From positions 124,001 through 188,000 of the forward strand of contig CM060734.1 in the NCBI GenBank assembly GCA_030704615.1: a stretch of DNA of 64,000 nucleotides, written 5' to 3'. Within the stretch, counting starts at the first letter, position 1. The number at the start of each line of letters is the position of its first letter. The position numbers were made by a program, and so were the translations under genes. Positions 847 through 49,506 of this stretch are shown piece by piece. This stretch comes from Takakia lepidozioides (lineage: Eukaryota; Plantae; Bryophyta). Below the pieces are notes generated by a model that was not told where the DNA came from, did no database searches, and saw only the letters and a program-made list of their open reading frames with translations.

Positions 847-3219
847 ATGGCAGAGGGCCAGGATGATGAGCGTCATGGAAGAGATGACCCCAATGAACAT
901 GGACTGCCCCCTAAGAAAATCAAGGGTCAAGGCAAGACTTGAATTGGGAAGTATATGATGACCCTAGCATACTAGCAGAAGAGGGCTGGGAGGATGTTCC
1001 AGAAGAGTTCAGGTGGCCGATGGCGAGATGTAAAAAAATCGTGAAGTGGTACCACATCAATCGATTGTGGCCTTTAAATAGGCATGACGTGCAAACCCGA
1101 AACAATTACGTAGAGTCCAGGTCTTGCACGAACTTGCATTTCCAGCGTAGGGCAAATGAGGTGCATTGCACATTGTGGGGTCAACCTCTCTTAAAGGGCC
1201 AAATCCCGTACACCTTGGCAGCCATGTTGTACGTTGAGGTGATATTGTTGCGTCCGGTGAATTGACAAACTGCTAGTAGGAGGAACGCAAGGATGCTATA
1301 CGATTTGGAGTACATCCCGGACACGTTTGGAACACATCCGGCTGCAACGTTAGAGGAACAACTGGTGGAAAGAGACCAGCAAATCATGACCCTGCATGAC
1401 CGACTGGACTGACAAACACTGCGCATAGCCGAGTTGGAAGCTAGATTGCAAGACATGCCTCCAAACAATGAAGGCACTGTTGTCCACAATGAGGTTCGAA
1501 CAAACGTCGTGGACATGGACGCGGAGTTTGCAATGTCCGATCGCAATATTGACCGCATCATTCACGAAATTACGGACGCCCTTGACCCTGCGGCCGATGA
1601 AACCATGGTTGAGGAACAACGAATTGCGGATGAAAGAAGGAGGAAAGGAAAAGAACCAGTAGTGGATACTGGGGAATGCTCGAGGGTCGCCATTCAATCC
1701 GAGATGAATGCGATATCTGATGTCGACCACGTTACAAAGGAGAGGGACATTGCAATGACAACTACATGGCACTTGTCCAAAACATTAGAGATTCGGGCAT
1801 GGGTCCCATTGAATGACGATTGGGAGAATTGGGTATAATGGGTGACCCATTTGGCCTCCAGAGAAGCATGGGTAGAGCGGGCACTGTCAGCCTTGCAACG
1901 TGTCGCACGCATGTCAAACCATAGCGTGGATAGCATTTATGCCAACATGCAAAGGTATAACGATCTCCGCAATGCATCAAGCGTGTTCGCCGGGTATACC
2001 AACTGAGCAAATGTAGAATCTATGTTCGATCGATGTGAGCACAGAATTTCGGGGTCGAACAGAAGCATAACCTGGGAATTGGAGATAGAGGAAGAGTGGG
2101 ACACCAGAACAAGGGTGACTAGCCACATCAAACCGGCCAAGAGGGAGGAGATACCACGACGCGTTTTGCCGTCATGGATATCAGATGACACAGTTTTTTC
2201 GATGTGCAGGAATCCATATGGCCCAGATGGATGTCATGTACTAGGATCATGTGGACATATGTTCCATCTCACATGTCTTATCCTTATCCCGCAAACTTTG
2301 TGGATGAGCGCTTGCCCAGAATACCGTACACCGATCCATCGCCGTTTCTATGAGCTGGTGGGCTTGGAGGAAAAGATGCCCATATGTTTTGAATACAATC
2401 GACACAACCTCCCATTGGATGGGCAACCATTTACATTTCTGAATTGTGTGCATTGGGGCAAGAACTTGATATGGGATGCATACAGAGAGATGCAGACAGA
2501 GAGATACAGACAGAGAGATGCATGCCATACATGTCGGAAACCCGGCATACGTTAAAAATCCCCAGTATTTTTGGGTCATGTATGACTGGGCGATAACGAT
2601 ACATGCGGGAGGCATTCCCGATTGGTGGGAGAGAGAGCAATTTTGCCGCAATTTGGGAGGGCATTGGAGTCAGAGAAGGTCCAGGTTTATCCAGCTCCCA
2701 CAAATTCCATGGGTGCTGGAGGAGAACGAATTGTATAACCGAGAACCGATTGGGAGACGTTTGTTGCTGTCCGAACTGGAAGATGCTATAATATGTCAAC
2801 GCCGAATAAATGAGGCGTACGAGGCGGCTTATCGTCGAAACGACACAATGGTTAGGGACATGGCCCGCGAGAGGCAGTTGGAGAGTTTCAAAACTACCAT
2901 CAAAGCAGTTGTATAGCAATGGAGGCGACTGTGGATAGACCGTTATCATCGTGTTTTGGGGGCTCTATTGCCAAATGTGGACGGCCTCGTTGTCGATTTG
3001 CATGCAGCCCGAGCACTTGTTGTCGATCCACCTCCGCCACATCATGAGAGTGAAGAAGAAAGTCAACTTTCGCCACGAAGTAGGCGGATGCAGGCCAAAA
3101 TTGATCACATGCCATTGGGCCCTTCATTGACTATGAGATCACGGTCACAAGCTCTGGCAATTGGCAGTGCAAATCAGGCCACAACATCACATCTCTTGTC
3201 CTCGGACAGTGACGACTAG
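847..3219 (+). pseudogene. Decayed ~790-codon gene with a RING-H2-type finger, probably transposon-borne
   Basis: ORFs 939, 1434 and 2022 share one frame; ORFs 2476 and 2956 share a second. RING-like (S)MCRNPYGPDGCHVLGSCGHMFHLTCL...CPEYR at ~2200-2330 has some Cys lost. Many TGA/TAG/TAA stops and no obvious introns. Confidence 0.65.
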
Positions 3220-8849: not shown

Positions 8850-11830
8850 GGTTTTAGTCATGGTTAACTAGAATTACCTACTTCTAGTTAACTAGGACAT
8901 TTTGGATATTTATATTTGTATTTTTTGTGTTGGGACTTCATTTGGTCTCACATGCCAAGTGAGGTGTCAAACCTCACTTGGGACATGGGGATAGGTTTCC
9001 CCTTGTGAGTGTTGAGGAGGGCTCATCTTCTTGTAGTTGAGCCTCCATGCGCCTCTCTCACCTCCATAGCTCTAGGTATTGAGAGGGAGTGTGTTGAGGG
9101 CTTTGTAGGGTGGATTCCCTTAGCAAGGGTGTCCTTGGCTTGACTTAGTTTCATGCGGTGTCACGACACCAATAGCACATATTGCAGCACGAGTTCGTAT
9201 TACTCTGGTGTCCGTAGGGTGATTGGTTACATTTGGCACATGCACATTATAAGGGTAATGACATAATAGAAGAACGGAAGGAGGATCGGAAAAATTTGTA
9301 AATTGCATTTTGGCTATGATTTCACCATTTCATGAGTGGAGTGTTTCCATTGTGTTCACTTTTATTATCACTACAAGAAGATGACCTTATGCTTGTGAGT
9401 GCGGAGTGTAAGGGTTAGTTTAGCACTTGTGTGTTGAAGAGCTTGGGAAGATAGCTCTTGTGTTGCAAGGTGTTGCATATATTGTAAAGGAAAATCCTTG
9501 TGGTGTTAGGGCTTTGAGAGATATTGCTTTGCCCTAATGAGGTGGAGAGCTCAAAGATGGAGCTTTTGTAGATCACAAAGGTTGCAAGGAAAAGTACTTG
9601 TGGTATTACACCAAGGTGTTGGAGAGCTCAAGAAGGAGCTTGTTGCCACAAGATTTGCAAGGATTGCAAGAGGGAAGTCTTGTGTGTGTGGAAGCACGGA
9701 TTCTAGGGTTTGAGAATCATTTCTATGCATTATGGAGTCAATGGTGTGTGCCATGGCTTGAGGAGAGCAACTAAATGATTGTTAGTGCTCATTTCACTAT
9801 CAATCTAGGGTTAACCAAGCTCAATTGTGGAGTTGTGGATGATAAGCCAAGGAGCTACATAGGCTTGGGCTTGAAGACAACAAGGGCAAGCACTTGGAAA
9901 GCATTAGGAAGCTCAAGAGGTTTGAAGGGAAACATATGGGTGAAAATTCTATCCATGATGATGTGAAACCAAGCCTAGAGCATTGAAGAGCTTGGAGCAC
10001 ATGTGGGAGATCATTGGAGGTGGTCTTCATGAAGAAAAGAGATTGTGGCTCAAGGCATGCATAGCAACTTCAACCATACATTAGCATGTGACAAGACAAG
10101 GAAGGGGAAGGTGAAGCTCATGTATTCATTCCCTTTTGGCTTAAGTTTTATGGTGGATGGTTGATCAAGCAAGTGATGCTTATGTGGGAGCATGCTTCCC
10201 AAGTGTGGCTTCCAGTTTAAAGCTTGAGGAGAGCTAGAAGGTAAAGGGAGAAAGTTGATTCCCTTGTGTATGAGGTGATGCATGTGTGGAGCATGCTTTT
10301 GGCTTGAGCTTTGCAATTTCAAGCTTGAGAGGAGTGGCTCTTGAGCTAGCAAGTGAAGGGAGCTTGAATGACCAAGGCTTGAGATGAGACAAGGCTTGGT
10401 GGCTTGCCAAATGAGGTATAAGCTTGATTTTGAGTTCCAATGAGAAATTGAGCTTGTTGTGTGGCCAATGCATTGCTAGTTGAGTTGGAGACAAACTTGA
10501 GTAGCTTAAGGTGAAGAAGATCAAAGGAATTTGCCTTGGCACCCCATAGAATTCATGGATGCTTGAGGGGATTAAGCATAGAGCCCCAAGGAGCACAAAC
10601 CCTAGCTTGGTAAGGCTAAACCTCAAGAAAATAGAGGGGGAAGTGGCTAAAGCCTAGGGGGAAATGGCTAAACCCTGGGGGGAAATGGACTACTCTATGA
10701 GGGGGAAATGGCTATTCCTAAGGAGAATATAAGGGGGAATACAAAAAAAAAAAACGTATAGACCCAGGGGAATACTGGGGGAATACTATGGCAGATTCTC
10801 AAGAATACTCTTAGGGAACTTAGGGAACTTATTGGGAACCTATTGGGAACCCATTGGGAATGCATTGGGAACATGGTGACATAGGAAGAGTCCTTGGAGG
10901 TCTGTTTGGGGTCCTTGGAGGACCATTGGGAGTCCTTGGAGGACTGTTTGGAGGACCATTGGGAGTCCTTGGATGACTGTTTGGAGTCCTTGGAGGACTA
11001 TTTGGAAGACCATTGGGAGTGCTTGGAGGACTGTTTGGGGTCCTTGGAGGACCATTTGGAGTTCTTTGGAGGACTATTTGGGGTCCTTGGAGGCCAATAC
11101 TTGGCGAGCTTGAGGAGTCTTTGGCGACTTGTGTGATGGACTATTTGGGGTCCTCGAGGGCTAAGTTTTGGCAGGCTCTTGGGGCCTTGGTGTACTGTTT
11201 TGGAGTCCCATTGTACAAGGATTGGGAGCCTTAGTGAGATTGTTTGAGAGACATATTCTTGAGGGCTCCTGGAGAGTTATTTGAGAGACCCTTGAAAGGT
11301 AGTCTTGTCTATTGTTCAAGCAAGAGAGTGTGGAGATAGGGTAGTGGGATGAGGGCATGCTGGGATTAGGAATTGCTTTAGTCTTTCTTTCTTGTAGTCT
11401 TTCACCTTCTCTGTAGGCCAAAACCTTTCCATAGGTGGAGGCAAGAGTCAGTCCGGGTTTGGGCTGGAGTATCATTGCAGGAGCGACACTGTGGAGTGTT
11501 TTTGGTGTGGGGGAGTTGTTGTCTTGATTTTCTTGTGTTTGGATTCCCTCGACACCTGCATGCTTGACTGTGCACCATGTTAGCTTTGTGTGGACGCTTG
11601 TTTTCATAGGAGGTTGGTCTGGATTTGATCACCGGTCAATCCTAGAGCGTGCTGTCGGTGGTGAGGCTGGGGTGATGACCAATCAGACCATCATTGTTTC
11701 TCTTATGGTGAGGCTGGGTTGATGATCAGCAGACCGTAGGAGTGCTTGCGGTGGATGCAGGTACAAGTTTATATTACGAACCTAGTAGTCTAAACCATAA
11801 GCCGCAACAGGTTTTCTACCCGGTTACCTT
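8850..11830 (+). mobile_element. Long LTR / 5' region of a Ty3/Gypsy element (5' boundary uncertain)
   Basis: CG-poor non-coding block directly upstream of a gag-like ORF. It shares ggctcatctt...gttgagcctc and tggattccc...cttggcttgactt with the LTR at 44497-45004. Confidence 0.6.
10840..11170. repeat. Degenerate ~21-bp tandem repeat in the LTR (mirrored at ~23050-23350, 21 bp shorter)
   Basis: Repeated ttggaggaccattgggagtcc / ttggaggactgtttggggtcc. Confidence 0.85.
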
Positions 11831-11891
11831 GTGGAAAGGGGGATTAGAGACAAGTTTACAACAGGTGTGGTTGTGAGTTTTCATCACGGAG

Positions 11892-12380
11892 GTGTCACCA
11901 GCTGCTAAGGAGAGTGCCGGTACAAGCACCAGCGATACTAGTGGGTATACAAGACGAGGTGTGCGGTTTAGGCCACCTTCACCTTCAGTGTCTTCTGAGG
12001 AAGGTTCAGACTCAGAGTTAGGAGGATTCTCGCCGAGGGTGCAAGCCATTTCCGTGCCATTGTTGTGGGATACGATGGAGGAAATGTATGGAGCTACCAA
12101 GGGGCCACGTCGGTACTCTGGAGCTGTGGGCACCATTGAGCTTGATGATTTCATACATGAGTTTGATAGTTGGTGTGATTTGCAGCAGATGCGCAATCCA
12201 CAACTGCTTACGCCTTTTATGGCGTGGAAGGGGTTGTTTCAGCACCTTGAGGGGCCCATGGATGACTACCATGAGTTTAGGCGGGGACATGAGGTGGAGA
12301 TTGAGGAATGACGGGTGTATTGGTCACTTGACTATGTCTCCATCTCTAGAAGCACAAGGGCAGTGGTGACACCGGCAGCT
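11892..12380 (+). pseudogene. Gypsy gag N-terminus, truncated by the hAT insertion
   Basis: MYGATKGPRRYSGAVGTIELDDFIHEFDSWCD...WKGLFQHLEG has a retrotransposon-gag-like YSG...DDF..F pattern. It follows the LTR-like block and has a TGA at 12309. Confidence 0.7.
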
Positions 12381-12539
12381 ACACCCTCGGTTATCAACGA
12401 CACGTCCGTCAGTCAGCGTTAGATCATGTCAGACCTGGCGCTGACGGGACCTCCGTCACGTCAGGTTCGGGGAATATTTAGGTAAAAATAATACCAGGTA
12501 AAATACTGCCACTTAAGCAGCCACGTCGCCCACATGGTG

Positions 12540-14140
12540 GCGGTGGCAAATACATTTTGAAAATTAACAAAATGAACACGACCGCCAATTCGTTTTGCTT
12601 TTCAAAATTAAAAAAAAATAGCGACCGCCGTATTGGCGGTCGCTTCAATTTTTATTTATTTTAAAGCAAGATTGACGGTCGCCTTATTTTTCGAAATAGA
12701 AAAAAAAATAGCGACCGCCATATTGGCAGTCGCTTCAAATGTTTTTTTTTTTAAAGCAAGATTGGCAGTCGCCTTATTTTTCGAATTAAAAAAACAAATA
12801 GCGACCGATATGCTGGCGGTCACTTCAATTTATTGTCTTAATAAAACAAGATTGGCGGTCGCACGATGACAAATACATTTTTGAAAATTAACAAAATGAA
12901 CGCGACCGCCAATTATGGCGGTCACTTTGTTTTTCGAAATTAAAAAATAAATAGCGACCGCCGTATTGGCGGTCGCTTCAATTTTTTTTTTTAAAGCAAG
13001 ATTGGCAGTCACACTGGCAGTCGCTTTATTTTTCGAAATAGAAAAAGAAATAGCGACCGCCATATTGGCGGTCGCTTCAAATGTTTTTTTTTTAAAAGCA
13101 AGATTGACGGTCGCCCTATTTTTCGAATTAAAAAAATAAATTGCGACCGATATGCTGGCGGTCGCTTCAATTTATTGTCTTAAAAAAACAAGATTGGCGG
13201 TCGTATTGGCGGTCGCACGATGACAAATACATTTTTGAAAATTAACAAAATGAACGCGACCGCCAATTATGGCGGTCACTTTGTTTTTCAAAATTAAAAA
13301 ATAAATAGCGACCGCCGTATTGGCGGTCGCTTCAAATTTTTTTTTTTAAGCAAGATTGGCAGTCGCACTGGCGGTCGCTTTATTTTTCGAAATAGAAAAA
13401 GAAATAGGGACCGCCATATTGGCGGTCGCTTCAAATGTTTTTAAAAAAAAAGCAAGATTGACGGTCGCCCTATTTTTGGAATCTAAAAAATAAATAGCGA
13501 CCGTTATGCTGGCGGTTGCTTCAATTTTTATTTTTATTTTTTAAAATCAATTTATTGTTTAAAAAAAACAAGATTGCGGTCGTATTGGCGGTCGCCTAAT
13601 TTAAAAAAGAAAACAAGCGACTGCCGTATTGGCGGTCGCACGGTGGCAAATACATTTTTGAAAATTAACAAAATGAACGCGACCGCCAATTATGGCGGTC
13701 GCACGGTGGCAAATACATTTTTGAAAATTAACAAAATGAACGCGACCGCCAATTATGGCGGTCGCTTTGCTTTTCGAAATTAAAAAAGAAATAGCGACCG
13801 CCGTATACGGCGGTCGCTTCAATTGTTTTTTTTTAAAAGCAAGATTGGCGGTCGCACTGGCGGTCGCTTTATTTTTCGAAATAGAAAAACAATAGCGACC
13901 GCCATATTGGCGGTCGCTTCAAATTTGTTTTTAATAAAAGCAAGATTGGCAGTCGCACTGGCGGTCGTTTTATTTTCGAATTTAAAAAAAAAAATAGCGA
14001 CCGCTATCTTGGCGGTTGCTTAAATTTAAAAATATATGACCGCAATATTGTACAAAATGAAAGGAAATAAAATCGATCGCAGTAGTGGCGATCGCTTGCT
14101 TTTCATTTTAAAAAAAATACGGACCGTAGTATTAGCGGTT
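12540..14140. repeat. Subterminal array of gcgaccgcc-N(5-6)-ggcggtcgc palindromes with AT-rich spacers (mirror at ~20430-21680 has fewer units)
   Basis: Dozens of copies are directly visible. Confidence 0.9.
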
Positions 14141-14438
14141 GCTTAATTTCAAAATTACAACAAATATGGTTGTACAGCTTTTTTTGGGTGGGCGCTATTG
14201 GTTCGTCATTTATTCATTTCACTTTCGTCCGCACCTTTTGCCGTTGTGGCTTCCACCAAAACCACTTCAGCAGATTGTGTATAAACTCAACACTACAACC
14301 CATATTAACCCACTTGGGTTGCTGACAAGTGTAGAAGTGTTGGGCTATCGCATTGCACTCTACATTCACAACACGTTCATTTATAGGTGACTGTTTTTTG
14401 TTGCTTGCAACGTTAGGTCCCAGGGGAATGGATATTGG

Positions 14439-17372
14439 GTGAAGATGAGGGAGGAATGGAGCCCTTAGTATACGGCAATCCCAAACACTGTCAGTGCTAC
14501 TGGTAGTGTTGAGTGCAACCTATGTGGATTAAAGCTTTCTTATCGTAAGGATCGGTTGCTCGCTCACCTCGGCTATAAAGGTGTGAAGAGCGTTGGGGTG
14601 GGTTTATGCCCCAAAACATCTATGCGGGTAAAAAACCACTTTGCCCAGTGTGGAGGCAATATTCCAATGTCTTTGGATCTGGACATGACCTCTGAGCAGA
14701 ACACTCTATCTTCCCGTCAGGATGCCCCGATTAGTACCCAGGGTGACTCTTGTGAGGCTTCGGGTGTCCTTGGACAAGTGGGTTGTGCCGGAGCAACACC
14801 TGCTTCAACACCTCTTTGTACCCCTACACTTCAACGGAGTAGAGGATTACGGCAGCAATCCATGCAATAAGGTCTTAACTTGTCTGCGAAAAGATAGTTG
14901 GATAAAAAATGGGCGCAGTTTTTCTTCGAAGTCAACATACCATTTAATGTGGCAAGGCTTCTGGCATATGTTTCTGCTGTTAGAGCAACCTCGGAGTGCA
15001 GATCCACGTACGTGCCTCCGACTTATCACAATCTCCGCACAGGATTGCTAGAAGACGCCATGACCGAGCTTACCCAAAAGATCAACGATAGGACGGGCGA
15101 GTGTATCAGAAAATATGGAAGCACTATATGTGCCGATGGTTGGAGTTCTGTCACAAACAGACCGTTGTTCAATGTCATGCTCGTATGTCCAGCTAGGGAA
15201 CAATTCTTGGGATCGGTCGACACTAGCGGCGAGAAGAAAAATGGACGTTATCAATGCGAACTATTGACGGATTTCATCGAACAGGTCGGAAGTGATAGAA
15301 TCGTGCAAATATGCATAGACAATGCCGCTAACATGAAAAACACTGCAGACATGTTGTTGGTACGTTATCCTCATATGTACTATCAAGGTTGTGCTGCTCA
15401 TATCCTTGACCTCATTTTGGAAGATTGGGGGAAAAAACAGTGGGTGAAACAACTTGTCAAGCGAGCGAAGACTGTTGTGTCGTTCATCCGCACACACCAC
15501 ATCCCTTTGGCAATATATAGGAGGCACGAACCCAAATACAGCCTCCGCAATCCAGACGAAACTCGTTTTGTCACTACCTTCTTGATGGTGGATCGGTTGG
15601 TGACGGTGAAAAGCAGTCTGGAGCACACCATCATCGATCCTCAATGGGATGCGTACACACGGACATTGTGGGACTCCATAAAAGCCAAGTCATTGGGCAA
15701 AAGTCGAAAAGTTCGAAATAGCATTCGCAGCGATGATTTCTGGAAGAAATGTGAAAACTTTGTTTATATGGTTGAGCCGGTGTTAATCGTCTTGCGGGAG
15801 TTTGATGGAAAGCAACCAGTAATGGGCAAGGCATGGTTACTAATGCAAAATCTTGATAAACACGTCCAATCCTTGCGGCATCCTCCCTTCTCCTTGGAAC
15901 CTGAACTTGCGGACAGTGCTGAGGATGCATTTTACGACCGTCGTTCGATGGTTCGAACGGACTTGCATTATGTGGGGGCTTTGCTCAATCCATTCTTGCT
16001 CGACAATACCATGCTCCAAGACGACGCTGATGCCAAGGCCGGCCTCGTGCGAGTGCTCATGCGACTAGCTCCGCCGAACCATGCAGAGAGAGCTATATCC
16101 GAGTACCAATGCTTCTCAGATCGCCGCGACCCCTTTGAGGACATGCCAGATCCAAAAGAGCTCAATATGCTGCCACATGAATGGTGGGATCTGATTGGAG
16201 CTGTAGCAAGAACATTGGCTCCCATTGCGAAGCGTATTCTTGCTCAAGTGTGCTCTGCCTCATTATGCGAACGCAATTGGAGCAGTTACTCATTTGTTCA
16301 CAACAAGATTCGCAACAGATTGAATCCCGCGAGGGCTGACAAATTGGTGTATGTGTATACCAATTGCCGACTGCTACGCGAGAGGGCAGCGGATGATGCT
16401 GCAGCATGGTATGAGAGGAATTTGCATTCCGAAGACTCTGCTTCTGAGGCTGATTCGATGAGTGATGATACTGAGCCTCAGAGGGAATCATCTGCCTCCG
16501 ATAGTGAAGATGGATCTGATGATGCTCCCGAAAATGCGTATGACCCGTTTATATTCACAGAGGATGATGCTTATATCCAGCCGACCTTTGATGACCTTCT
16601 TGAAGAAGTGCGTATCGCAGATGAAGGTGAAGCTGCAATTGTGTCATCCCCAAAACATGGTCCTCAAAATGAAGTTGGGGTCGACCCTCGCCCCCCACTA
16701 CACGCTGAAGCCACCGGTAGTGCCCCAATGGAACTTAGGGGTGATGTACTGCCAGGACCGATCGACGTACACAACCCTGTTCATACAAACGATGGTGTCG
16801 AACCCATTGTATAGTCGACGGGACGGGATCATACCTCACCGATACGACCAGCTCCACCACAATGCCAAAACCGATCCAGCTCCCCATCAACACAACGGGC
16901 ATTAAGGAGCAACATGGTTGATCTGTTTTCCACACGCATGCATCATTCTGCTGCATTAGACTGGGCGAAAGTTGAAGCCTCGAATGATGACAACTTGCCA
17001 CTACAATTCCACCTTAACCGACGTGTTGCGCAGCAGACTTGTGGTTCCTCACATGCCGGACCATCTCGGGCAGTCCCCCCTCCGGTACCTCCTTTGAGAC
17101 CACCTTCGATTGCGTCCCGAGTCCATAAACGATAGAGAACAGTCCAACTTTTTGTAGGCGATCGGCCCACAAACAGGTCAGATACCGTGGATGGTATTCA
17201 AGACCGGAGCGGAAGTCGACCTCAGAGAGAACTAAATGTGGTTCGAGGTCGCTTGCAGATTCAAAGGCCTGGACATATGAGGTTGGATAGGGAAGACAAT
17301 TCCAGCACTGATCATGGCAACGGTGGTGAAGTCGAGGGTGACCCGGATTTTCAACCCATCGGAGCATTATGA
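14439..17372 (+). pseudogene. hAT transposase (BED zinc finger, DUF659-type core, hAT C-terminal dimerisation domain, long low-complexity tail) with in-frame stops
   Basis: CNLC...RLLAHLG...GLC (BED), DGWS, CAAHILDL, ETRF, EWW and CERNWS..SFVHNKIRNRL. ORFs 14556, 14898, 16914 and 17187 are all in one frame, separated by TAG/TAA. Confidence 0.92.
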
Positions 17373-17758
17373 TTATAATCTTCTTCGTCCCGCCGTCGAA
17401 GCAGTAAAATGAATTGAAGCAAAACAGCTGTATATTGGCGGTCGCTTATTTATTTTAAATGTTTGAAAATGAAGCGACCGCCTATGCTCGCGGTCGCTTA
17501 TTTTTTTTAATATTTTTTTATAATGAAGCGTGTGCCGATGTTGGCGGTCGCTTATTTTTTTGAATTCTTATAAAATGAAGCGACTGCCTATGTTGGCGGT
17601 CGCTTATTTTTCAATTTAAAAAAAAAATGAAGCGACCGCCTATGTTGGAGGTCGCTTATTTATTTAATTTTTAAAAAAATGAAGCGACCTCAGCTGGATC
17701 GGTTTTGGCATTGTGGTGGAGCTGGTCGTATCGGTGAGGTATGATCCCGTCCCGTCGA

Positions 17759-20134
17759 CTATACAATGGGTTCGACACCATCGTTTGTATGAACAGGGTT
17801 GTGTACGTCGATCGGTCCTGGCAGTACATCACCCCTAAGTTCCATTGGGGCATTACCGGTGGCTTCAGCGTGTAGTGGGGGGCGAGGGTCGACCCCAACT
17901 TCATTTTGAGGACCATGTTTTGGGGATGACACAATTGCAGCTTCACCTTCATCTGCGATATGCACTTCTTCAAGAAGGTCATCAAAGGTCGGCTGGATAT
18001 AAACATCATCCTCTGTGAATATAAACGGGTCATACGCATTTTCGGGAGCATCATCAGATCCATCTTCACTATCGGAGGCAGATGATTCCCTCTGAGGCTC
18101 AGTATCATCACTCATCGAATCAGCCTCAGAAGCAGAGTCTTCGGAATGCAAATTCCTCTCATACCATGCTGCAGCATCATCCGCTGCCCTCTCGCGTAGC
18201 AGTCGGCAATTGGTATACACATACACCAATTTGTCAGCCCTCGCGGGATTCAATCTGTTGCGAATCTTGTTGTGAACAAATGAGTAACTGCTCCAATTGC
18301 GTTCGCATAATGAGGCAGAGCACACTTGAGCAAGAATACGCTTCGCAATGGGAGCCAATGTTCTTGCTACAGCTCCAATCAGATCCCACCATTCATGTGG
18401 CAGCATATTGAGCTCTTTTGGATCCGGCATGTCCTCAAAGGGGTCGCGGCGATCTGAGAAGCATTGGTACTCGGATATAGTTCTCTCTGCATGGTTCGGC
18501 GGAGCTAGTCGCATGAGCACTCGCACGAGGCCGGCCTTGGCATCAGCGTCGTCTTGGAGCATGGTATTGTCGAGCAAGAATGGATTGAGCAAAGCCCCCG
18601 CATAATGCAAGTCCGTTCGAACCATCGAACGACGGTCGTAAAATGCATCCTCAGCACTGTTCGCAAGTTCAGATTCCAAGGAGAAGGGAGGATGCCTCAA
18701 GGATTGGACGTGCTTATCAAGATTTTGCATTAGTAACCATGCCTTGCCCATTACTGGTTGCTTTCCATCAAACTCCCGCAAGACGATTAACACCGGCTCA
18801 ACCATATAAACAAAGTTTTCACATTTCTTCAAGAAATCATCGTTGCGAATGCTATTTCGAACTTTTCGACTTTTGCCCAATGACTTGGCTTTTATGGAGT
18901 CCCACAATGTCCATGTGTACGCATCCCATTGAGGATCGATGATGGTGTGCTCCAGACTGCTTTTCACCGTCACCAACCGATCCACCATCAAGAAGTTAGT
19001 GGCAAAACGAGTTTCGTCTGGATTGCGGAGGCTGTATTTGGGTTCGTGCCTCCTATATATTGCCAAAGGGATGTGGTGTGTGCGGATGAACGACACAATA
19101 GTCTTCGCTCGCTTGACAAGTTGTTTCACCCACTGTTTTTTCCCCCAATCTTCCAAAATGAGGTTAAGGATATGAGCAGCACAACCTTGATAGTACATAT
19201 GAGGATAACGTGCCAACAACATGTCTGCAGTATTTCTCATGTTAGCGGCATTGTCTATGCATATTTGCACGATTCTATCACTTCCGACCTGTTCGATGAA
19301 ATCCGTCAATAGTTGGCATTGATAACGTCCATTTTTCTTCTCGCCGCTAGTGTCGACCGATCCCAAGAATTGTTCCCCAGCTGGACATACGAGCATGACA
19401 TTGAACAACGGTCTGTTTGTGACAGAACTCCAACCATCGGCACATATAGTGCTTCCATATTTTCTGATACACTCGCCCGTCCTATCGTTGACCTTTTGGG
19501 TAAGCTCGGTCATGGCGTCTTCTAGCAATCCTGTGCGGAGATTGTGATAAGTCGGAGGCACGTACGTGGATCTGCACTCCGAGGTTGCTCTAACAGCAGA
19601 AACATATGCCGGAAGCCTTGCCACATTAAATGATATGTTGACCTCGAAGAAAAACTGCGCCCATTTTTTATCCAACTATTTTTTCGCAGACAAGTTAAGA
19701 CCTTCTTGCATGGATTGCTGCCGTAATCCTCTACTCCGTTGAAGTGTAGGGGTACAAAGAGGTGTTGAAGCAGGTGTTGCTCCGGCACAACCCACTTGTC
19801 CAAGGACACCCGAAGCCTCACAAGAGTCACCCTGGGTACTAATCGGGGCATCCTGACGGGAAGATAGAGTGTTCTGCTCAGAGGTCATGTCCAGATCCAA
19901 AGACATTGGAATATTGCCTCCACACTGGGCAAAGTGGATTTTTACCCGCATAGATGTTTTGGGGCATAAACCCACCCCAACGCTCTTCACACCTTTATAG
20001 CCGTGGTGAGCGAGCAACCGATCCTTACGATAAGAAAGCTTTAATCCACATAGGTTGCACTCAACACTACCAGTGGCACTTACAGTGTTTGGGATTGCCG
20101 TATACCAAGGGCTCCATTCCTCCCTCATCTTCAC
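17759..20134 (-). pseudogene. Inverted duplicate of the hAT transposase
   Basis: The 638-aa ORF differs from the left copy at 21 residues by eye. The BED finger lies in ORF 19676-20134. It shares TAG stops with the left copy at 19676-19678 and 17759-17761. Confidence 0.92.
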
Positions 20135-21829
20135 CCAATATCCATTCCCCTGGGACCTAACGTTGCAAGCAACAAAAAACAGTCACCTATAAATGAACGT
20201 GTTGTGAATGTAGAGTGCAATGCGATAGCCCAACACTTCTACACTTGTCAGCAAACCAAGTGGGTTGATGTGGGTTGTAGTGTTGAGTTTATACACAATC
20301 TGCTGAAGTGGTTTTGGTGGAAGCCACAACGGCAAAAGGTGCGGACGAAAGTGAAATGAATAAATGACGAACCAATAGCGCCCACCCAAAAAAAGCTGTA
20401 CAACCATATTTGTTGTAATTTTGAAATTAAGCAACCGCTAATACTACGGTCCGTATTTTTTTTTAAATGAAAAGCAAGCGATCGCCATTACTGCGATCGA
20501 TTTTATTTCCTTTCATTTTGTACAATATTGCGGTCATATATTTTTAAATTTAAGCAACCGCCAAGATAGCGGTCGCTATTTTTTTTTTAATTCGAAAAAT
20601 AAAACGACCGCCAGTGCGACTGCCAATCTTGCTTTTATTAAAAACAAATTTGAAGCGACCGCCAATATGGCGGTCGCTATTTTTTTTCTATTTCGAAAAA
20701 TAAAGCGACCGCCAGTGCGACCGCCAATCTTGCTTTAAAAAAAAAACAATTGAAGCGACCGCCAATACGGCGGTCGCTATTTCTTTTTTAATTTCGAAAA
20801 GCAAAGCGACCGCCATAATTGGCGGTCGCGTTCATTTTGTTAATTTTCAAAAATGTATTTGCCACCGTGCGACCGCCAATACGGCAGTCGCTTGTTTTCT
20901 TTTTTAAATTAGGCGACCGCCAATACGACCGCAATCTTGTTTTTTTTAAACAATAAATTGATTTTAAAAAATAAAAATAAAAATTGAAGCAACCGCCAGC
21001 ATAACGGTCGCTATTTATTTTTTAGATTCCAAAAATAGGGCAACCGTCAATCTTGCTTTTAAAAAAAAAACATTTGAAGCGACCGCCAATATGGCGGTCG
21101 CTATTTCTTTTTCTATTTCGAAAAATAAAGCGACCGCCAGTGCGACTGCCAATCTTGCTTTTAAAAAAAAAAATTGAAGCGACCGCCAATACGGCGGTCG
21201 CTATTTATTTTTTAATTTCGAAAAACAAAGTGACCGCCATAATTGGCGGTCGCGTTCATTTTGTTAATTTTAAAAAGTGTATTTGTCATCGTGCGACCGC
21301 CAATACGGCAGTCGCTTGTTTTCTTTTTTAAATTAGGATACGACCGCCAATCTTGTTTTTTTAAGACAATAAATTGAAGCGACCGCCAGCATATCGGTCG
21401 CTATTTGTTTTTTTAATTCGAAAAATAAGACGACCGCCAATCTCGCTTTTAAAAAAAAAAACATTTGAAGCGACTGCCAATATGGCGGTCGCTATTTCTT
21501 TTTCTATTTCGAAAAATAAGGCGACCGCCAGTGCGACCGCCAATCTTGCTTTAAAATAAATAAAAATTGAAGCAACCGCCAATACGGCGATCGCTATTTT
21601 TTTTTAATTTTGAAAAGCAAAACGAATTGGCGGTCGTGTTCATTTTGTTAATTTTCAAAATGTATTTGCCACCGCCACCATGTGGGCGACGTGGCTGCTT
21701 AAGTGGCAGTATTTTACCTGGTATTATTTTTACCAAAATATTCCCCGAACCTGACGTGACGGAGGTCCCGTCAGCACCAGGTTTGACGTGACCTAACGCT
21801 GACTGACGGACGTGTCGTTGATAACCGAG

Positions 21830-24800
21830 GGTGTAGCTGCCGGTATCACCACTGCCCTTGTGCTTCTAGAGATGGAGACATAGTCAGGTGACCAACACAC
21901 CCGTCATTCCTCAATCTCCACCTCATGTCCCCGCCTAAACTCATGGTAGTCATCCATGGGCCCCTCAAGGTGCTGAAACAACCCCTTCCACGCCATAAAA
22001 GGCGTAAGCAGTTGTGGATTGCGCATCTGCTGCAAATCACACCAACTATCAAACTCATGTATGAAATCATCAAGCTCAATGGTGCCCACAGCTCCAGAGT
22101 ACCGACGTGGCCCCTTGGTAGCTCCATACATTTCCTCCATCGTATCCCACAACAATGGCACGGAAATGGCTTGCACCCTCGGCGAGAATCCTCCTAACTC
22201 TGAGTCTGAACCTTCCTCAGAAGACACTAAAGGTGAAGGTGGCCTAAACCACACACCTCGTCTTGTATACCCACTAGTATCGCTGGTGCTTGTACCGGCA
22301 CTCTCCTTAGCAACTGGTGACACCTCCGTGATGAAAACTCACAACCACACCTGTTGTAAACTTGTCTCTAATCCCCCTTTCCACAAGGTAACCGGGTAGA
22401 AAACCTGTTGCGGCTTATGGTTTAGACTACTAGGTTCGTAATATAAACTTGTACCTGCATCCACCGCAAGCACTCCTACGGTCTGCTGATCATCAACCCA
22501 GCCTCACCATAAGAGAAACAATGATGGTCTGATTGGTCATCACCCCAGCCTCACCACCGACAGCACGCTCTAGGATTGACCGGTGATCAAATCCAGACCA
22601 ACCTCCTATGAAAACAAGCGTCCACACAAAGCTAACATGGTGCACAGTCAAGCATGCAGGTGTCGAGGGGATCCAAACACAAGAAAATCAAGACAACAAC
22701 TCCCCCACACCAAAAACACTCCACAGTGTCGCTCCTGCAATGATACTCCAGCCCAAACCCGGACTGACTCTTGCCTCCACCTACGGAAAGGTTTTGGCCT
22801 ACAGAGAAGGTGAAAGACTACAAGGAAGAAAGACTAAAGCAATTCCTAATCCCAGCATGCCCTCATCCCACTACCCTATCTCCACACTCTCTTGCTTGAA
22901 CAATAGACAAGACTACCTTTCAAGGGTCTCTCAAATAACTCTCCAGGAGCCCTCAAGAATATGTCTCTCAAACAATCTCACTAAGGCTCCCAATCCTTGT
23001 ACAATGGGACTCCAAAACAGTACACCAAGGCCCCAAGAGCCTGCCAAAACTTAGCCCTCGAGGACCCCAAATAGTCCATCACACAAGTCGCCAAAGACTC
23101 CTCAAGCTCGCCAAGTATTGGCCTCCAAGGACCCCAAATAGTCCTCCAAAGAACTCCAAATGGTCCTCCAAGGACCCCAAACAGTCCTCCAAGCACTCCC
23201 AATGGTCTTCCAAATAGTCCTCCAAGGACTCCCAATGGTCCTCCAAACAGTCCTCCAAGGACTCCCAATGGTCCTCCAAGGACCCCAAACAGACCTCCAA
23301 GGACTCTTCCTATGTCACCATGTTCCCAATGCATTCCCAATGGGTTCCCAATAGGTTCCCAATAAGTTCCCTAAGTTCCCTAAGAGTATTCTTGAGAATA
23401 TGCCATAGTATTCCCCCAGTATTCCCCTGGGTCTATACGTATTTTTTTTTTGTATTCCCCTTTATATTCTCCTTAGGAATAGCCATTTCCCCCTCATAGA
23501 GTAGTCCATTTCCCCCCAGGGTTTAGCCATTTCCCCCTAGGCTTTAGCCACTTCCCCCTCTATTTTCTTGAGGTTTAGCCTTACCAAGCTAGGGTTTGTG
23601 CTCCTTGGGGCTCTATGCTTAATCCCCTCAAGCATCCATGAATTCTATGGGGTGCCAAGGCAAATTCCTTTGATCTTCTTCACCTTAAGCTACTCAAGTT
23701 TGTCTCCAACTCAACTAGCAATGCATTGGCCACACAACAAGCTCAATTTCTCATTGGAACTCAAAATCAAGCTTATACCTCCTTTGGCAAGCCACCAAGC
23801 CTTGTCTCATCTCAAGCCTTGGTCATTCAAGCTCCCTTCATTTGCTAGCTCAAGAGCCACTCCTCTCAAGCTTGAAATTGCAAAGCTCAAGCCAAAAGCA
23901 TGCTCCACACATGCATCACCTCATACACAAGGGAATCAACTTTCTCCCTTTATCTTCTAGCTCTCCTCAAGCTTTAAACTGGAAGCCACACTTGGGAAGC
24001 ATGCTCCCACATAAGCATCACTTGCTTGATCAACCATCCACCACAAAACTTAAGCCAAAAGGGAATGAATACATGAGCTTCACCTTCCCCTTCCTTGTCT
24101 TGTCACATGCTAATGTATGGTTGAAGTTGCTATGCATGCCTTGAGCCACAATCTCTTTTCTTCATGAAGACCACCTCCAATGATCTCCCACATGTGCTCC
24201 AAGCTCTTCAATGCTCTAGGCTTGGTTTCACATCATCATGGATAGAATTTTCACCCATATGTTTCCCTTCAAACCTCTTGAGCTTCCTAATGCTTTCCAA
24301 GTGCTTGCCCTTGTTGTCTTCAAGCCCAAGCCTATGTAGCTCCTTGGCTTATCTTCCACAACTCCACAATTGAGCTTGGTTAACCCTAGATTGATTGTGA
24401 AATGAGCACTAACAATCATTTAGTTGCTCTCCTCAAGCCATGGCACACACCATTGACTCCATAATGCATAGAAATGATTCTCAAACCCTAGAATCCGTGC
24501 TTCCACACACACAAGACTTCCCTCTTGCAATCCTTGCAAATCCTGTGGCAACAAGCTCCTTCTTGAGCTCTCCAACACCTTGGTGTAATACCACAAGTAC
24601 TTTTCCTTGCAACCTTTGTGATCTACAAAAGCTCCATCTTTGAGCTCTCCACCTCCTTAGGGCAAAGCAATATCTCTCAAAGCCCTAACACCACAAGGAT
24701 TTTCCTTTACAATATATGCAACACCTTGCAACACAAGAGCTATCTTCCCAAGCTCTTCAACACACAAGTGCTAAACTAACCCTTACACTCCGCACTCACA

Positions 24801-24927
24801 AGCATAAGGTCATCTTCTTGTAGTGATAATAAAAGTGAACACAATGGAAACACTCCACTCATGAAATGGTGAAATCATAGCCAAAATGCAATTTACAAAT
24901 TTTTCCAATCCTCCTTCCGTTCTTCTA
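21830..24927 (-). mobile_element. Inverted duplicate of the Gypsy LTR + gag fragment
   Basis: Reverse complement of 9267-12385; gag ORF at 21904-22323. Confidence 0.85.
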
Positions 24928-25139
24928 CAAAAAATATATCCTTGGGTCCTTGGATAATTTATACCCCCTCTGTAAATATTTTTTGAAGATTATAAAACCC
25001 TCTCATGTAAATATATATAAATTTATAATTCTTTAAAAATACCCCCTTCTGTATGTATATTCCCCTTTTCAGTCATTAAAATACCCTCAAATATATATAT
25101 GTATGTTTTTATATTATATTATGTTATATTTTTGCAATC

Positions 25140-25449: not shown

Positions 25450-26639
25450 ATGTTAAAGTTTCATCTTGTGTCAAGAGTTGTGGAGTAGTTTGGTGGTAAG
25501 GAGATAATCGTGGTACCTAGGTGGTCTGTGGTTCAAAATTTGCGCTGCAACGTTTATACGTTTACATCACAATTTTTGAAAAACTCACGATCTAATCGCT
25601 TATATTTAAGGTAGATTTGTCCCCCCTCTGTATGTATAATTCTGTACATGGGGGGTTAAAAATACCCCCTCATGTGCACGCACGCAGCTGGTACAGATTG
25701 GGGGGAGTGCACCCCCCAGGATCTCACCCCCCAAATGCCCCTGCCCTCTCCCTATGCCTACACTATCTCAACACCCACCCCTACCCACAACATCAGCCAC
25801 ACACTAGCCCATGATCTCCCCACCACATCACCCCTATATACAACATACTTCACTCCAACACTCATCCACATCCCTTCGCATTCACATGCCCGCACAACAA
25901 AGGTACACAATCCTCCTCATCAACTTTCTTGCCACCACATCCCTTCAGTATTTCTCATCATACGCTTCCCCCACCCATACACAGCCTACCAGCTCCACCG
26001 TCACTATTGAGGAGGGTAGCTACCGTGTGAGCAGCTCACGTAAGCACGCCCACGCTTTGCACACTAATCGTGAGAAGAATCCCTTAAGCGTGAGCACATT
26101 GTAAGCGTGAGCAAATTAGGGAAGCGGAGCCTACAGCCGAGGTAATACAGGGCCTATTGCCGTGGACGCAAACACTTTTGAATGGAAATTCAAGTAGGCG
26201 GAGATGTCGTGCTCCATGCATGCAATATGGGATGAATATGTGATGAAAAACTGCCGAATGGCAAACACGGCAAACACGACAAATTCTAAACCCAGGGAAA
26301 CACGGGAAACCCTAACCACAAACACTGATCCCGCAACCCAAACTCCAAACCCCCAAGGCAAACCATAAGCCTAAAACCCAAGCCCGCACTGATAAACCCC
26401 AAAGAATAAACGGAAACCACAAACCCAGAACGGTAACCCTAATTCGTGAAAGTGTACCTTACAGAATAAGCCCCAACCAGCGACAATGTAGAAGAGGTGG
26501 AGAAGCGAAGCAAAAAGAGGCTTAAATTTAGAAGAATAGGTGGAAAAAATTCAAGTGTCATAAAGAAGCTCAACGGAAATTGTATGTGTTGTTGAGTTTA
26601 AATAAGTGTATTTTAATTTGGCAGAAGCTTAGTTCCAGC

Positions 26640-33531: not shown

Positions 33532-34177
33532 CGGGAGAGACAACATAGGGTTTTTTTGGCCCGATTTTTCATCCGTGGATGAAAAACAATAAAAAACACC
33601 TTTCTACCCTGACGGATTTTATCCGTAGCTGAGTTAAACATAGGTTTTAGGGTAGGGGTTAGGGTTTCACCCCGTAATTAATCATAATTAGGGGTAGTTA
33701 AGATCAATTCCAGGTCATAATCATATGTACTCGTCATCCATAAACAAATCACTTGTCAGGATGAAAAGTAGGGAATATCATCCGTGGCAGCGGTTTACCT
33801 CCTCCTAGGTAATTCATCATTCCTCACCAGACCACCCGGTATGGATACAAAAGAGTCAATGAAAGAGGAATGAAAAATTATTATCCTGGTAGTTTTTCAA
33901 CCGGTATGGATGAAAAACAAGATGTTGTTGGCAACCCTCATAGAGGTAATTTTTCATTCCTTGGTGACTCATCTGGTATGGATGAGAGTCAATAAAAGAG
34001 GAATGAAAAAACCAAAAAACCATCCTAACGGTAATTCAGTGTCCATCCTGGTGGCTCATCCGGTATGGATGAAAAACCGATAGAGGATGGACGAAACTCT
34101 GTTAAAACTTCGTCCGGTATGGGTGAAAAAACAGGAAATCAACACTGATAACAACCTGCCGGTTCCCAGGAGAGAGG
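33532..34177. repeat. 646-bp direct repeat, copy 1
   Basis: cgggagagacaacatagg...ccggttcccaggagagagg, near-identical to 35842-36486. Confidence 0.95.
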
Positions 34178-35841: not shown

Positions 35842-36486
35842 CGGGAGAGACAACATAGGGTTTTTTTGGCCCGATTTTTCATCCGTGGATGAAAAACAGT
35901 AAAAAACACCTTTCTACCCTGACGGATTTCATCCGTAGCTGAGTTAAACATAGGTTTTAGGGTAGGGGTTAGGGTTTCACCCCGTAATTAATCATAATTA
36001 GGGGTAGTTAAGATCAATTCCAGGTCATAATCATCTGTACTCGTCATCCATAAACAGATCACTTGTCAGGATGAAAAGTAGGGAATATCTCTGTGGCAGC
36101 GGTTTACCTCCTCCTAGGTAATTCATCATTCCTCACCAGACCACCCGGTATGGATAAAAAAGAGTCAATGAAAGAGGAATGAAAAATTATTATCCTGGTA
36201 GTTTTTCAACCGGTATGGATGAAAAACAGGATGTTGTTGGCAACCCTCATAGAGGTAATTTTTCATTCCTTGGTGACTCATCTGGTATGGATGAGAGTCA
36301 ATAAAAGAGGAATGAAAAAACCAAAAAACCATCCTAACGGTAATTCAGTGTCCATCCTGGTGGCTCATCCGGTATGGATGAAAAACCGATAGAGGATGGA
36401 TGAAACTCTGTTAAAATTTCATCCAGTATGGGTGAAAAAACAAGAAATCAACACTGATAACAACCTGCCGGTTCCCAGGAGAGAGG
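35842..36486. repeat. 646-bp direct repeat, copy 2
   Basis: Same ends and same internal ccggtatggatgaaaaa subrepeats as copy 1. Confidence 0.95.
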
Positions 36487-37922: not shown

Positions 37923-39910
37923 TCACACATCCAAAAAGTGGTTCAATCTTATAAGCGCAAAGCGCTGGGTCTCAGTAAAATTTTCCATGATGTGGGCAAC
38001 CCGAAGACAGAACGTGAGAAATGATTTATTGTCTTGGGTTCTCTCACCAGAGGGATGCTCTGCATTTGTGGCTTTCCCCTTCTGCTCCGCCAGAGACTTG
38101 CTGTGTGCCACCTTCTTCGCCCTAGCAGCGAGAGCGTCAAGGAAGCTCTCATTGACGCATTGGATGATGGTTGGAGGTTCTAGCTTTGGCCTGTGCGTAA
38201 ACGTCACCGCCGAATACCGCCGTGTAGGCTCGCCCTCAAATGCCAACTTCTTGGCAGAGCCAGTCCCACTTCGAACTGACTTGGGAACCCGGACGACCGG
38301 TGACTGGGTAGGAGCAACAGCAGTCGCAGGACCTTGAACAAAGTCGTCGTCCGAGTCACTCTCTTGGGTCCCCTCCTGCACCTCCTTCGATGCCCCGATG
38401 GTTTTCTTCTTTTTGGGTGTTACTGCACTCACCTGTTTCCTTGTCCTTTTCCTTTGGCCTTTACTCTTCTCATGCAATTTCTCCTGAATTCCTGCCTGAG
38501 CAAGCTCTGCCGCTTTCCTGGAGTTTGTAAGCGCTTTTGCCTCTTTTGCACCCAACGGAGGCAGCGGAGCCCGGTTTCGTCGGAATTCAGCATCCAGCTT
38601 CAATTGAAACTCGGATAGGTCGAGCGAGCCGGGCGGAAGGTCCACATACCAAGGGCAATCACGCAAATGTTCCAGATGCCACTCCTTCACAATATCGTCA
38701 GTGTACATGGAGTCAGCCCCAGGGTTCCTCCATGCCAGGAAGAATGGTGGCTTGAAAGACAGATGACCTTTCTCCAAAAGGGAGAACTTGCAGTACCTGC
38801 ATTCATGAAAAACACAATGACGTCCCTGAAATGCATATTCGGCACCATTTTTCCCAGGTTGGGGCGGATGTGAGTGGGCCTAGAAATGGAAAAATGGCGC
38901 CGAATTTCGGTTTTCGGTGACTGCCACCCTAGGGACTTAGCCATCTTGGGAGCCCTGAACTGGAAATTCGGCGCCATTTTTCCCGGTTTGGCCCGAAGAT
39001 GGCTAAGTCCCTGAACGGCAATAGGGTCTAGAACTGGAAAATGGCGCCGAATTTCCAGTTCAGGGCCAGCCACCCTAGGGACTTAGCCCGAAAATGGCTA
39101 AGTCCCTGAACGGCAATAGGGCCTAGAACTGGAAAATGGCGCCGAATTTCCAGTTCGGGGCCAGCCACCCTAGGGACTTAGCCCGAAAATGGCCAAGTCC
39201 CTGAACGGCAATAGGGCCTAGAACTGGAAAATGGCGCCGAATTTCCAGTTCGGGGCCAGCCACCCTAGGGACTTAGCCCGAAAATGGCCAAGTCCCTGAA
39301 CGGCAATAGGGCCTAGAACTGGAAAATGGCGCCGAATTTCCAGTTCGGGGCCAGCCACCCTAGGGACTTAGCCCGAAAATGGCTAAGTCCCTGAACCGCA
39401 ATAGGGCCTGGAACTGGAAAATGGCGCCGAATTTCCAGTTCGGGGCCAGCCAGTCTAGGGACTTAGCCCGAAAATGGCCAAGTCCTGAACGGCAATAGGG
39501 CCTAGAACTGGAAAATGGCGCCGAATTTCCAGTTCGGGGCCAGCCAGTCTAGGGACTTAGCCATTTTCGGAGCCCTGACTGGAAATTCGGCGCCATTTTC
39601 CCTAACACCACATGAGGCTTCTAACATCCTGAAATGCAAGGACTTGAAAGAAAGGCAGCGCATATGTACCTGTACAGAAGGCGCATTGCTGCTTTGTCCG
39701 CGTTTGGCTGGTCGGTGAACTCGTGGCTCCGGTGAGCATCTGCTATCTCCCGAAAGAATAGGTTGGTTTTGTAGAGCAGAAAGTGGCGGTACAGAGCCTA
39801 AAGACACCCCTGGTTTTGAAGCCATGATGGAATTCTTCACGGCTGTGAGCACGAATTGCAAGAGCACTCGGGGGGGGGGGGGGGGGGGGTTTGAGGTGGA
39901 GAGAGCTTGC
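37923..39910 (-). pseudogene. 3' exons of an uncharacterised accessory gene of the Mutator-like element (intron ~38797-39669)
   Basis: Donor ag|GTACAT at 39669 and acceptor tgcAG| at 38797 join ...KAAMRLLYR to YCKFSLLEKGHLSFKPPFF in the frame of the 284-aa ORF. Confidence 0.55.
38840..39600. repeat. 95-bp tandem array (~6 copies) containing aaaatggcgccgaatttcc, located in the predicted intron
   Basis: gcccgaaaatgg at 39086, 39181, 39276, 39371 and 39466. Confidence 0.95.
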
Positions 39911-40186
39911 GACATGAGTCGGACTCGGGAGCTCAGCCACTGATGCTGGGCAGAGCTGCTATTGCAGGCTTGGGCCTCACGGAGGCGGATATGGAGCCTT
40001 GTCCTTTCCAGATACAGACGTCTCTGGGAGGATCGGAGCAGGCTCGGGGCATGACACGGCATGAGTTGGCTATCAGACTACGGCCGGATCACCCTACAGA
40101 TGGCTCAGTGATGCGAGCCAAGGCCATTGTGACAGACGCAGTCTCATACGATGTCCTGGTTGGTGGGGCAGTGTTGTACCCCATGG

Positions 40187-40860
40187 GCAGCCGGGCATGG
40201 CAATGGATTGCGAGACTCGAGGTCGGGTCTGTTTTGGGAGATGGTGCGGGTTTTGCGCCACTTGCAGCTTCATCAAGCTGTATCTCCAGCATACATCTTG
40301 GAGAATGTGCCACTGATGGGCGATTCTCGGGCCAGGGTGATGGCCAGTGTGCATCAAGTCCGGTCGTGGCTTGGGTCAGCAGTGTTGCTAGATGCAGCTA
40401 CAGTGGGTCACGGGCTCATCGTCCACGGCTATGGTGGACTAACATGATGCCACCCGCACTGCTCAAGCGTGCATTTGATGGGGTGCAAAGGCCAGCACAT
40501 CTCACAGTGGATAACATTCTGGACACAGGGAGGCAGTCTCAACGTGTGAGACACGATGACCGTTCGCCTTTGGCAGTGGTCAACAAGGTGGGTCAACCAC
40601 GAGCAGCATTACCTACACTGCTCAGCTTCCCAGGATCGCATGCTTTCCGGGATAGTGGACCTGGCCTCCTGTGGGATGCTCAGTTGCAGCAGTTAGTGGA
40701 GCCTAATGCTGACGAGCGTGAGAGCGGCAATGGGTTTTACCACTGGTACCACGGCGGTGTCGTCTCTTTCTGAGGCATCACGTCGTCAAGTGTTGGGGCA
40801 AGCAATGGATCTCAATTGCTTGACCTGGATTATCAGCTTGGCTCTAGCTGAGCAACGCAG
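40187..40860 (+). pseudogene. DNMT3-like C5-cytosine methyltransferase domain within pol (motifs V/VI-X; motifs I-IV missing)
   Basis: AGHGNGLRDSRSGLFWEM; PAYILENV (40301-40309); LDAA.VGSRAHRPRLWWTN; ERE(R)AMGFTTGTT; SRRQVLGQAMDL. The motifs are spread over frameshifts. Confidence 0.88.
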
Positions 40861-43800: not shown

Positions 43801-44095
43801 CACCGTGATACGTTGAGGTATGCCACTATACGTGGTGGAGGATATCGTCCTGGGGTTCGGAGGTTTAGCCCTGGTGACTATGTTTATTTGCAGCAGACTG
43901 CTCCTACGACTCTGGATGTTACTGCAGGGCGTGTTATTCTGAGGGTTCGAGAGGTGTTGCCCTCAGGGGTCCTGATCTTAGAGGGTCGGGATGGCATGAC
44001 TTGGAAAGACCATGTGCGTAATTGTGCGCCATGTCACCTTCCAATGTCGATGGCAGAGTTGACCCAAACTTGGCAGTGGTACCTGCAGGTTTGAG

Positions 44096-44230
44096 GTGCA
44101 TGCTCTGTGGGTCTGCCAAAGGGGCAGCCACCATGCTGGTGTTGATCGATGCTCAAGGGGTTGGCATATGGATGCTGACACCACCTCTTGAGAAGGTTCC
44201 TGACGGAGATTGGTTGTGTCCACACTGCTT
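44096..44230 (+). other. PHD finger at the integrase C-terminus (frameshifted)
   Basis: CMLCGSAKGAATML...LTPPLEKVPDGDWLCPHC. Confidence 0.85.
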
Positions 44231-44496
44231 GGGATAGTGGCAGTGGACATGACTGGAGGCAGCTAACAAGACATGGGAGGCCAAGCTCATAGGAGTCAAT
44301 ACATGAGATCCCAAGCTCAAGTTCACAGGTTGCAAGACGGCGACTAACGATGGGGCAACTCTTGCACCCGGCCTCTGATCTATCGAGTTTGAGTGTAGTA
44401 GGGATAGTGGTGGAGGACTTAGTGAGGCTATGGTCACTATCACATCTTGTGGCTACCTGGACTTAGAGGGACCTAAGCACCAGCTAGGGGGGCGAT

Positions 44497-49494: not shown

Positions 49495-49506
49495 GCTCTG
49501 ATACCA
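49495..49506 (-). promoter_or_regulatory. Primer-binding site for initiator tRNA-Met
   Basis: Minus strand TGGTATCAGAGC, 2 nt inside the LTR end. Confidence 0.92.

Follow-up and report, generated by a model that had tools for sequence, protein, structure and literature searches.

Nested dead transposons in a 15.7-kb palindrome of the bryophyte Takakia lepidozioides, built like the maize killer loci

How does a large palindrome made of transposon remnants arise, and could it silence the families from which it was built? The question is raised by a 15.7-kb inverted duplication in the bryophyte Takakia lepidozioides, which lies in a stretch of 64,000 nucleotides (assembly GCA_030704615.1, contig CM060734.1, positions 124,001 to 188,000 of the forward strand; this whole stretch is called the window below, and coordinates are counted from its first base). 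A preliminary description of the locus had read each arm as a long terminal repeat (LTR), a gag gene, a subterminal array and a transposase of the hAT superfamily, all pointing at the centre, and had proposed it as a transposon-killer hairpin. Our analysis favours, as the probable reading, a genuine inverted duplication of a nested pair of dead transposons, about 1% diverged, that would have been formed by fold-back. We take the locus to be a side product of rearrangement that has the architecture of a killer; it is not a demonstrated silencer.

The two arms were delimited with a repeat finder and with BLAST, in which the left arm was compared with the right arm in reverse complement, and the limits of both arms and of the 810-bp spacer agree exactly with those described before (Table 1). 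The repeat finder returned three long blocks at 98-99% complementarity together with many shorter matches in the arrays. By BLAST, positions 9267-12861 match 24927-21341 with 98.1% identity, and positions 13693-16881 match 20878-17692 with 98.6% identity; the ends are sharp on both sides. Outside the tandem arrays the arms are about 99% alike, differing by 64 substitutions in 6.2 kb (1.0%). Their difference in length falls almost wholly within the tandem array, where the left arm is longer by about 310-340 bp of a 354-bp higher-order repeat and by one 63-bp unit; the remaining arm-to-arm indels are small (21 bp, 12 bp and 1 bp). Read inwards, each arm consists of LTR-like sequence, the 5' part of gag, the hAT 5' end, the array and the transposase gene. 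Scans for Rfam families and tRNAs found none.

Table 1. Features of the inverted duplication (coordinates within the window)
Feature	Position	Strand	Size and remarks
Whole inverted duplication	9267-24927		15.7 kb; repeat finder and BLAST
Left arm	9267-16881	+	7615 bp; 98-99% complementary to 17692-24927
Right arm	17692-24927	-	7236 bp; mirror image of the left arm
Single-copy spacer	16882-17691	+	810 bp
Outer LTR-like segment	9267-11870	+	about 2.6 kb, non-coding; mirror at about 22345-24927 (-)
gag pseudogene, 5' part	11931-12478	+	about 180 codons; mirror at about 21737-22284 (-)
Candidate hAT 5' terminus, TAGGTAAAAATAATACC	12479-12495	+	mirror at 21720-21736 (-)
5' array, GCGACCGCC-N6-GGCGGTCGC units	12541-14030	+	about 28 exact 9-mer palindrome halves; 354-bp higher-order period
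5' array, shorter mirror copy	20545-21680		
hAT transposase pseudogene, left	14442-16814	+	intronless, about 790 codons; stops at 14466-8, 14868-70 and 14895-7
hAT transposase pseudogene, right	17759-20131	-	one stop, at 19676-8
Spacer 3' array	17431-17689		52-bp tandem units with the GCGACCGCC/GGCGGTCGC motif

The inner part of each arm belongs to a hAT element. The transposase matches Pfam domains DUF659 (E-value 1e-36) and Dimer_Tnp_hAT (8e-6), both above the cut-offs, and shows a faint match to the BED finger (E 0.15); its best relatives, proteins of about 1000 amino acids that are up to 59% identical over the core, align to it by tblastn in one frame from position 14448. The hAT identity proposed for the two convergent transposases is thus borne out by domains and relatives, and the idea of working genes has to be given up, with one stop in the right copy and three in the left. 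The stop of the right copy is the same codon as 14895-7 of the left, a TAG immediately before LDKKW, where the relative P0001 has Leu; the left copy has two further stops of its own. Related transposases were also found at 80 metagenome loci, apparently from moss-associated samples; they are at most 50% identical, and these loci share neither the 9-mer motif nor the outer region, the spacer or the terminus.

The candidate 5' terminus of the element, which begins with TAG, starts at position 12479, where the gag homology stops, and its mirror copy is the sole other occurrence of this sequence in the window. Allowing up to three mismatches, no inverted partner, as expected of hAT terminal inverted repeats, was found in the window; the hAT copy is therefore truncated on its 3' side, and a target duplication cannot be read from it. 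Further inwards, the 5' array is 1.1-1.5 kb long across the two arms. Exact matches to GGCGGTCGC or to its complement number 54 in the window, all of them inside the palindrome, which confirms the subterminal array of the preliminary description.

Beyond the transposase stop codon, the left hAT copy runs on into the spacer, with 550 bp that contain no credible gene followed by the 52-bp array, whose last unit is truncated by the central joint at 17691/17692 (...GAAGCGACCTC/AGCTGG..., the slash marking the joint). The hAT right end was earlier said to be missing; this applies to the 3' terminus, which has no partner in the window, and not to the 3' side as a whole, since part of a second array is retained in the loop. 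An open reading frame (ORF) of 117 amino acids in the spacer (17014-17367, minus strand) was considered as a second gene beyond the array and rejected: it has no Pfam match and no usable atlas match, its atlas recognition score is under the level reached by most real proteins, and it was treated as non-coding.

The outer part of the arms is probably of retroelement origin. The gag frame from about position 11931 matches 110 short bryophyte proteins, of which the named ones, 50-83% identical, belong to Calypogeia, Sphagnum and Marchantia. The frame itself has no Pfam match, and in one of its relatives (P0103) a match to Retrotrans_gag (PF03732; E 9e-4, just under the cut-off) lies immediately downstream of the shared part. 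Since relatives extend into Retrotrans_gag-like sequence, the frame would correspond to the N-terminal part of a retrotransposon gag, and the earlier gag assignment thereby finds indirect backing. By tblastn the homology runs through an in-frame stop at 12309-12311, which is common to both arms, and fades out at about 12479. This 5' part of gag is all of the coding region that is present, and no pol was found in the arms.

The outer segment is G-rich and CpG-poor (observed/expected ratio 0.29), carries 21-, 33- and 54-bp tandem repeats and is probably most of a retroelement 5' LTR, a label given for its position directly upstream of gag. Neither a second LTR copy, sought by comparing the arms with the remainder of the window by blastn and tblastx, nor, within the arms, an initiator-methionine primer-binding site was found. 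The element was probably of LTR type, Gypsy and Copia being alike possible. It had been suggested that it may be related to a DNMT-carrying Gypsy element, at 39920-44240 of the window; comparison of arms and spacer with the rest of the window by blastn and tblastx revealed no similarity, and this kinship is dropped. The CpG observed/expected ratio is 2.1 in the hAT array (12541-14030) versus 0.29 in the LTR-like segment (9267-11870), and thus the retroelement looks much older, or far longer methylated, than the hAT nested within it.

Various aspects of the decay of the two elements bear on the order of events. With one stop shared by the arms in the transposase and one in gag, the unit was dead before it was duplicated. 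Over a 638-codon ORF the arms differ by 26 substitutions, 21 of them non-synonymous and five synonymous, and 22 of the 26 are transitions; over the 6.2-kb non-array alignment 47 transitions and 17 transversions are evenly split between the arms. The decay after duplication is neutral. The arms have diverged more in gag and transposase, which are richer in CpG, than in the CpG-depleted outer part, and the decay was probably driven by methylation. At rates typically assumed for plants, the duplication would be several hundred thousand years old, and the sequence shows no sign that complementarity has been kept up beyond what this age explains.

From these data we infer the following order of events and fold-back route. 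A hAT element with long family-specific palindrome arrays would have inserted into the gag of an LTR-type retroelement, and both genes would then have accumulated stop codons. Later, a rearrangement with two junctions would have copied 7.2 kb, comprising the 5' part of the retroelement and, from the hAT, its 5' end, its array and the transposase gene, in reversed orientation onto a break within the hAT 3' palindrome array; 810 bp of hAT would have stayed behind as an asymmetric loop, and the hAT 3' end and the remaining retroelement would have been lost. The most likely route is a fold-back at the hairpin-prone array during repair or replication, involving the sister chromatid or a template switch: the break was presumably connected, 810 bp upstream, with the sister or nascent strand, and a second, non-homologous joint was made at 24927/24928. 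Such a fold-back accounts for the small loop, for a breakpoint that falls inside an array unit and for the absence of all distal sequence; the central breakpoints lie 810 bp apart in element coordinates, as expected, and none of the distal parts (hAT 3' end, rest of gag, pol, 3' LTR) was found elsewhere in the window.

Several points weigh against this reconstruction. There is no microhomology between 16881/16882 and 17691/17692, nor between 9266/9267 and 24927/24928, and a template switch is thus left without a positive signature at either joint. The GC content jumps at 8925/8926 and the GC skew changes also at 9267, so that the LTR could start at the left border of the arm or upstream of it. 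Finally, the metagenome relatives proved uninformative as a guide to the ends of the element, being too distant at 50% identity or less. Of the two possible LTR starts, the GC jump and a TGTTG...CAACA pair at about 8929 and 11865-11869 weakly suggest the one 340 bp to the left of the arm; the left flank would then be the original one, and the new joint would be that at 24927/24928. A short motif, TACCCCCTCTGTA(A/T)ATAT, recurs in the AT-rich sequence to the right of the palindrome (24940-25100 and 25610-25680), where it may be left over from another repeat family at this joint.

Could the palindrome nevertheless be a working killer, whose read-through hairpin is diced to small interfering RNAs (siRNAs) that silence other copies of the hAT and retroelement families in trans? 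We consider this doubtful. The structural part of the killer-hairpin interpretation holds, as the locus combines an inverted partial hAT and the 5' part of a retroelement with a perfect predicted stem in a killer architecture. The hAT 5' end is present in both arms, as are the array, the promoter region and the coding region, all of them parts found in Mu killer and in the Ac killer composite insertions (bioRxiv 10.1101/2020.01.07.897926), and the arms are still 98-99% complementary. For the central 1410 nucleotides an uninterrupted stem of 300 bp around the loop is predicted (-922 kcal/mol), and the canonical AATAAA is absent from the plus strand between the left stop codon and the inverted right arm. 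A plus-strand transcript that started at the left LTR or transposase promoter and passed 17691 would be self-complementary and form kilobases of double-stranded RNA (dsRNA); if transcribed, the locus would feed siRNA production like any long inverted repeat. On the other hand, the arms drift neutrally in rate and pattern, with no hint that complementarity has been preserved, and both driving genes are dead, and their own promoters may be silenced. The locus is best described as an unproven candidate of a known kind in a bryophyte, put forward on its structure.

A broader proposal, that hAT elements with hairpin-prone arrays repeatedly break and fold back here, thereby making killer loci of which the present one would silence both the hAT and its host retroelement, two unrelated families, appears improbable to us. 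If true, it would make this the first such locus outside maize, and DNA transposons would seed their own silencing across land plants. In any case the palindrome covers two element families in the same build as the maize killers, in a bryophyte, and offers a concrete and cheap candidate for small-RNA and methylation tests, data of a kind often at hand for genomes like this one. Should it prove silent or inert, it would simply add to the decaying inverted duplications of a transposon-rich region.

The fold-back reading of its origin has to be compared with other routes to the same layout. The composite insertions of maize p1-ww-id alleles arose by alternative transposition (bioRxiv 10.1101/2020.01.07.897926), and a hAT transposase might likewise have built the present palindrome by sister-chromatid or reversed-ends transposition with subsequent re-replication. 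This is unlikely here, in spite of a layout shared with CI-id4 as described in that source: two inverted 5'-derived hAT fragments (12479-17691 and 21736-17692) with unequal internal truncation and a loop, fused at 17691/17692, with both central breakpoints inside the hAT. Composite insertions are bordered by transposon termini, whereas here the outer borders fall in retroelement sequence and the candidate 5' termini lie 3.2 kb inside the arms, and the central joint falls within an array unit and not at a terminus. A perfect 8-bp target duplication would also be expected, and none exists at the outer borders, where the flanking 8-mers are TGACATAA and CAAAAAAT; a 5-bp border duplication was rejected as well, CATAA and CAAAA matching at four of five positions, which is not significant.

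Two copies of a composite element, i.e., a retroelement already carrying the hAT and multiplied by retrotransposition, could also have landed nearby in opposite orientation and lost the sequence between their hATs by later deletion. A common end base of both arms would be natural under this model if that base is an LTR terminus; the opening bases, TAGAAGAAC, are similar to GTTTTCTA (upstream of gag, at about 11811-11818) once the latter is reverse-complemented, and shared stops are equally expected. We nonetheless judge it very unlikely: the border of the left arm (AA before it, TAGAAG after it) lacks the usual TG start, the GC-rich 340-bp segment 8926-9266 with its TGTTG start could hold the true LTR start, and the model needs two nearby insertions plus a deletion with both ends, by coincidence, no more than 810 bp apart in element coordinates.

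An assembly artefact, through a chimeric read or a head-to-head joining of two haplotypes, is the natural suspicion for any palindrome, a known failure mode of long-read assembly, and its probability here is slight, given that the arms are separated by 64 substitutions and repeat-unit indels that are real differences and no read errors, among them about 370 bp of array (a fold-back read would give near-identical arms), that 810 bp of unique sequence set the joint off centre, that the sole run of N in the window (45183-45682) is far from the palindrome, and that bryophytes, to which the gag relatives point, are usually sequenced from haploid tissue, where there is no second haplotype that could be misjoined.

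The rest of the window contains further repeats. An exact match to the initiator-methionine primer-binding site, TGGTATCAGAGC, at 49495-49506 on the minus strand, in the GC-rich region of 46-50 kb, probably marks another LTR retrotransposon on that strand. Two direct repeats of about 550 bp (33532-34080 and 35842-36389), which are 98-99% identical at a spacing of 2.31 kb, may represent a tandem duplication or the two LTRs of a very small element. Tandem arrays occur in the GC-rich right half at 38893-39580 (95-bp units), 51805-53147 (96 and 234 bp) and 57051-57696 (74-75 bp). Lastly, a 177-amino-acid ORF at 2022-2555 (plus strand), 7 kb outside the palindrome, has weak matches to RING-H2-type zinc fingers (E about 1e-3, below cut-offs); among the scanned ORFs of at least 90 amino acids inside the palindrome, none has a kinase or RING domain.

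The duplicated unit can finally be set beside the known loci of hairpin architecture. These loci are Mu killer (Muk) and, for hAT, Ac killer 1 (p1-ww-id1) with p1-ww-id4, all in maize (PMC3440606; bioRxiv 10.1101/2020.01.07.897926; PMC13635294), and these loci are defined by transcription, dsRNA, siRNAs and silencing in trans. Muk arose naturally as an inverted duplication of part of a DNA transposon, with its terminus and promoter and the 5' portion of the transposase gene (PMC3440606), and the present locus resembles it in this respect. The likeness extends to the inability to transpose by itself and to a read-through transcript that folds into a kilobase-scale hairpin (bioRxiv 10.1101/2020.01.07.897926), the latter being a potential only at our locus. 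Muk differs in belonging to the Mutator superfamily, in its hairpin of about 4 kb, in the use of a flanking gene promoter and in genetically proven trans-silencing, whereas the Takakia locus, a sequence-defined one, is of hAT type, has arms of 7.2-7.6 kb that include 3.2 kb of retroelement, and contains a whole, dead transposase gene.

The comparison with Mu killer and Ac killer made in the preliminary description is apt in view of the shared build, and the name Ac killer is a published one (bioRxiv 10.1101/2020.01.07.897926; PMC13635294). In these same sources the two maize insertions consist of two fractured, 5'-derived hAT copies in inverted orientation with an unequal fusion and a loop, just as the hAT fragments of the palindrome do, and transcription of p1-ww-id4 probably begins at the promoter of the element itself. 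Ac termini and a perfect 8-bp target duplication border the maize insertions, which lie beside an inverted duplication of 0.3-3.2 Mb produced by sister-chromatid transposition. In contrast, the hAT termini of the present locus lie inside the arms, no target duplication was found, and the repeat reaches into the flanking retroelement.

Outside the killer loci, the endogenous long inverted repeats of plants that yield hairpin siRNAs, such as PAI1-PAI4 of Arabidopsis, are likewise segmental inverted duplications, and their transcripts form dsRNA and direct methylation of homologous copies in trans. Those loci are composed of genes or short repeats, whereas the inverted duplication described here consists of two nested transposons in a bryophyte.

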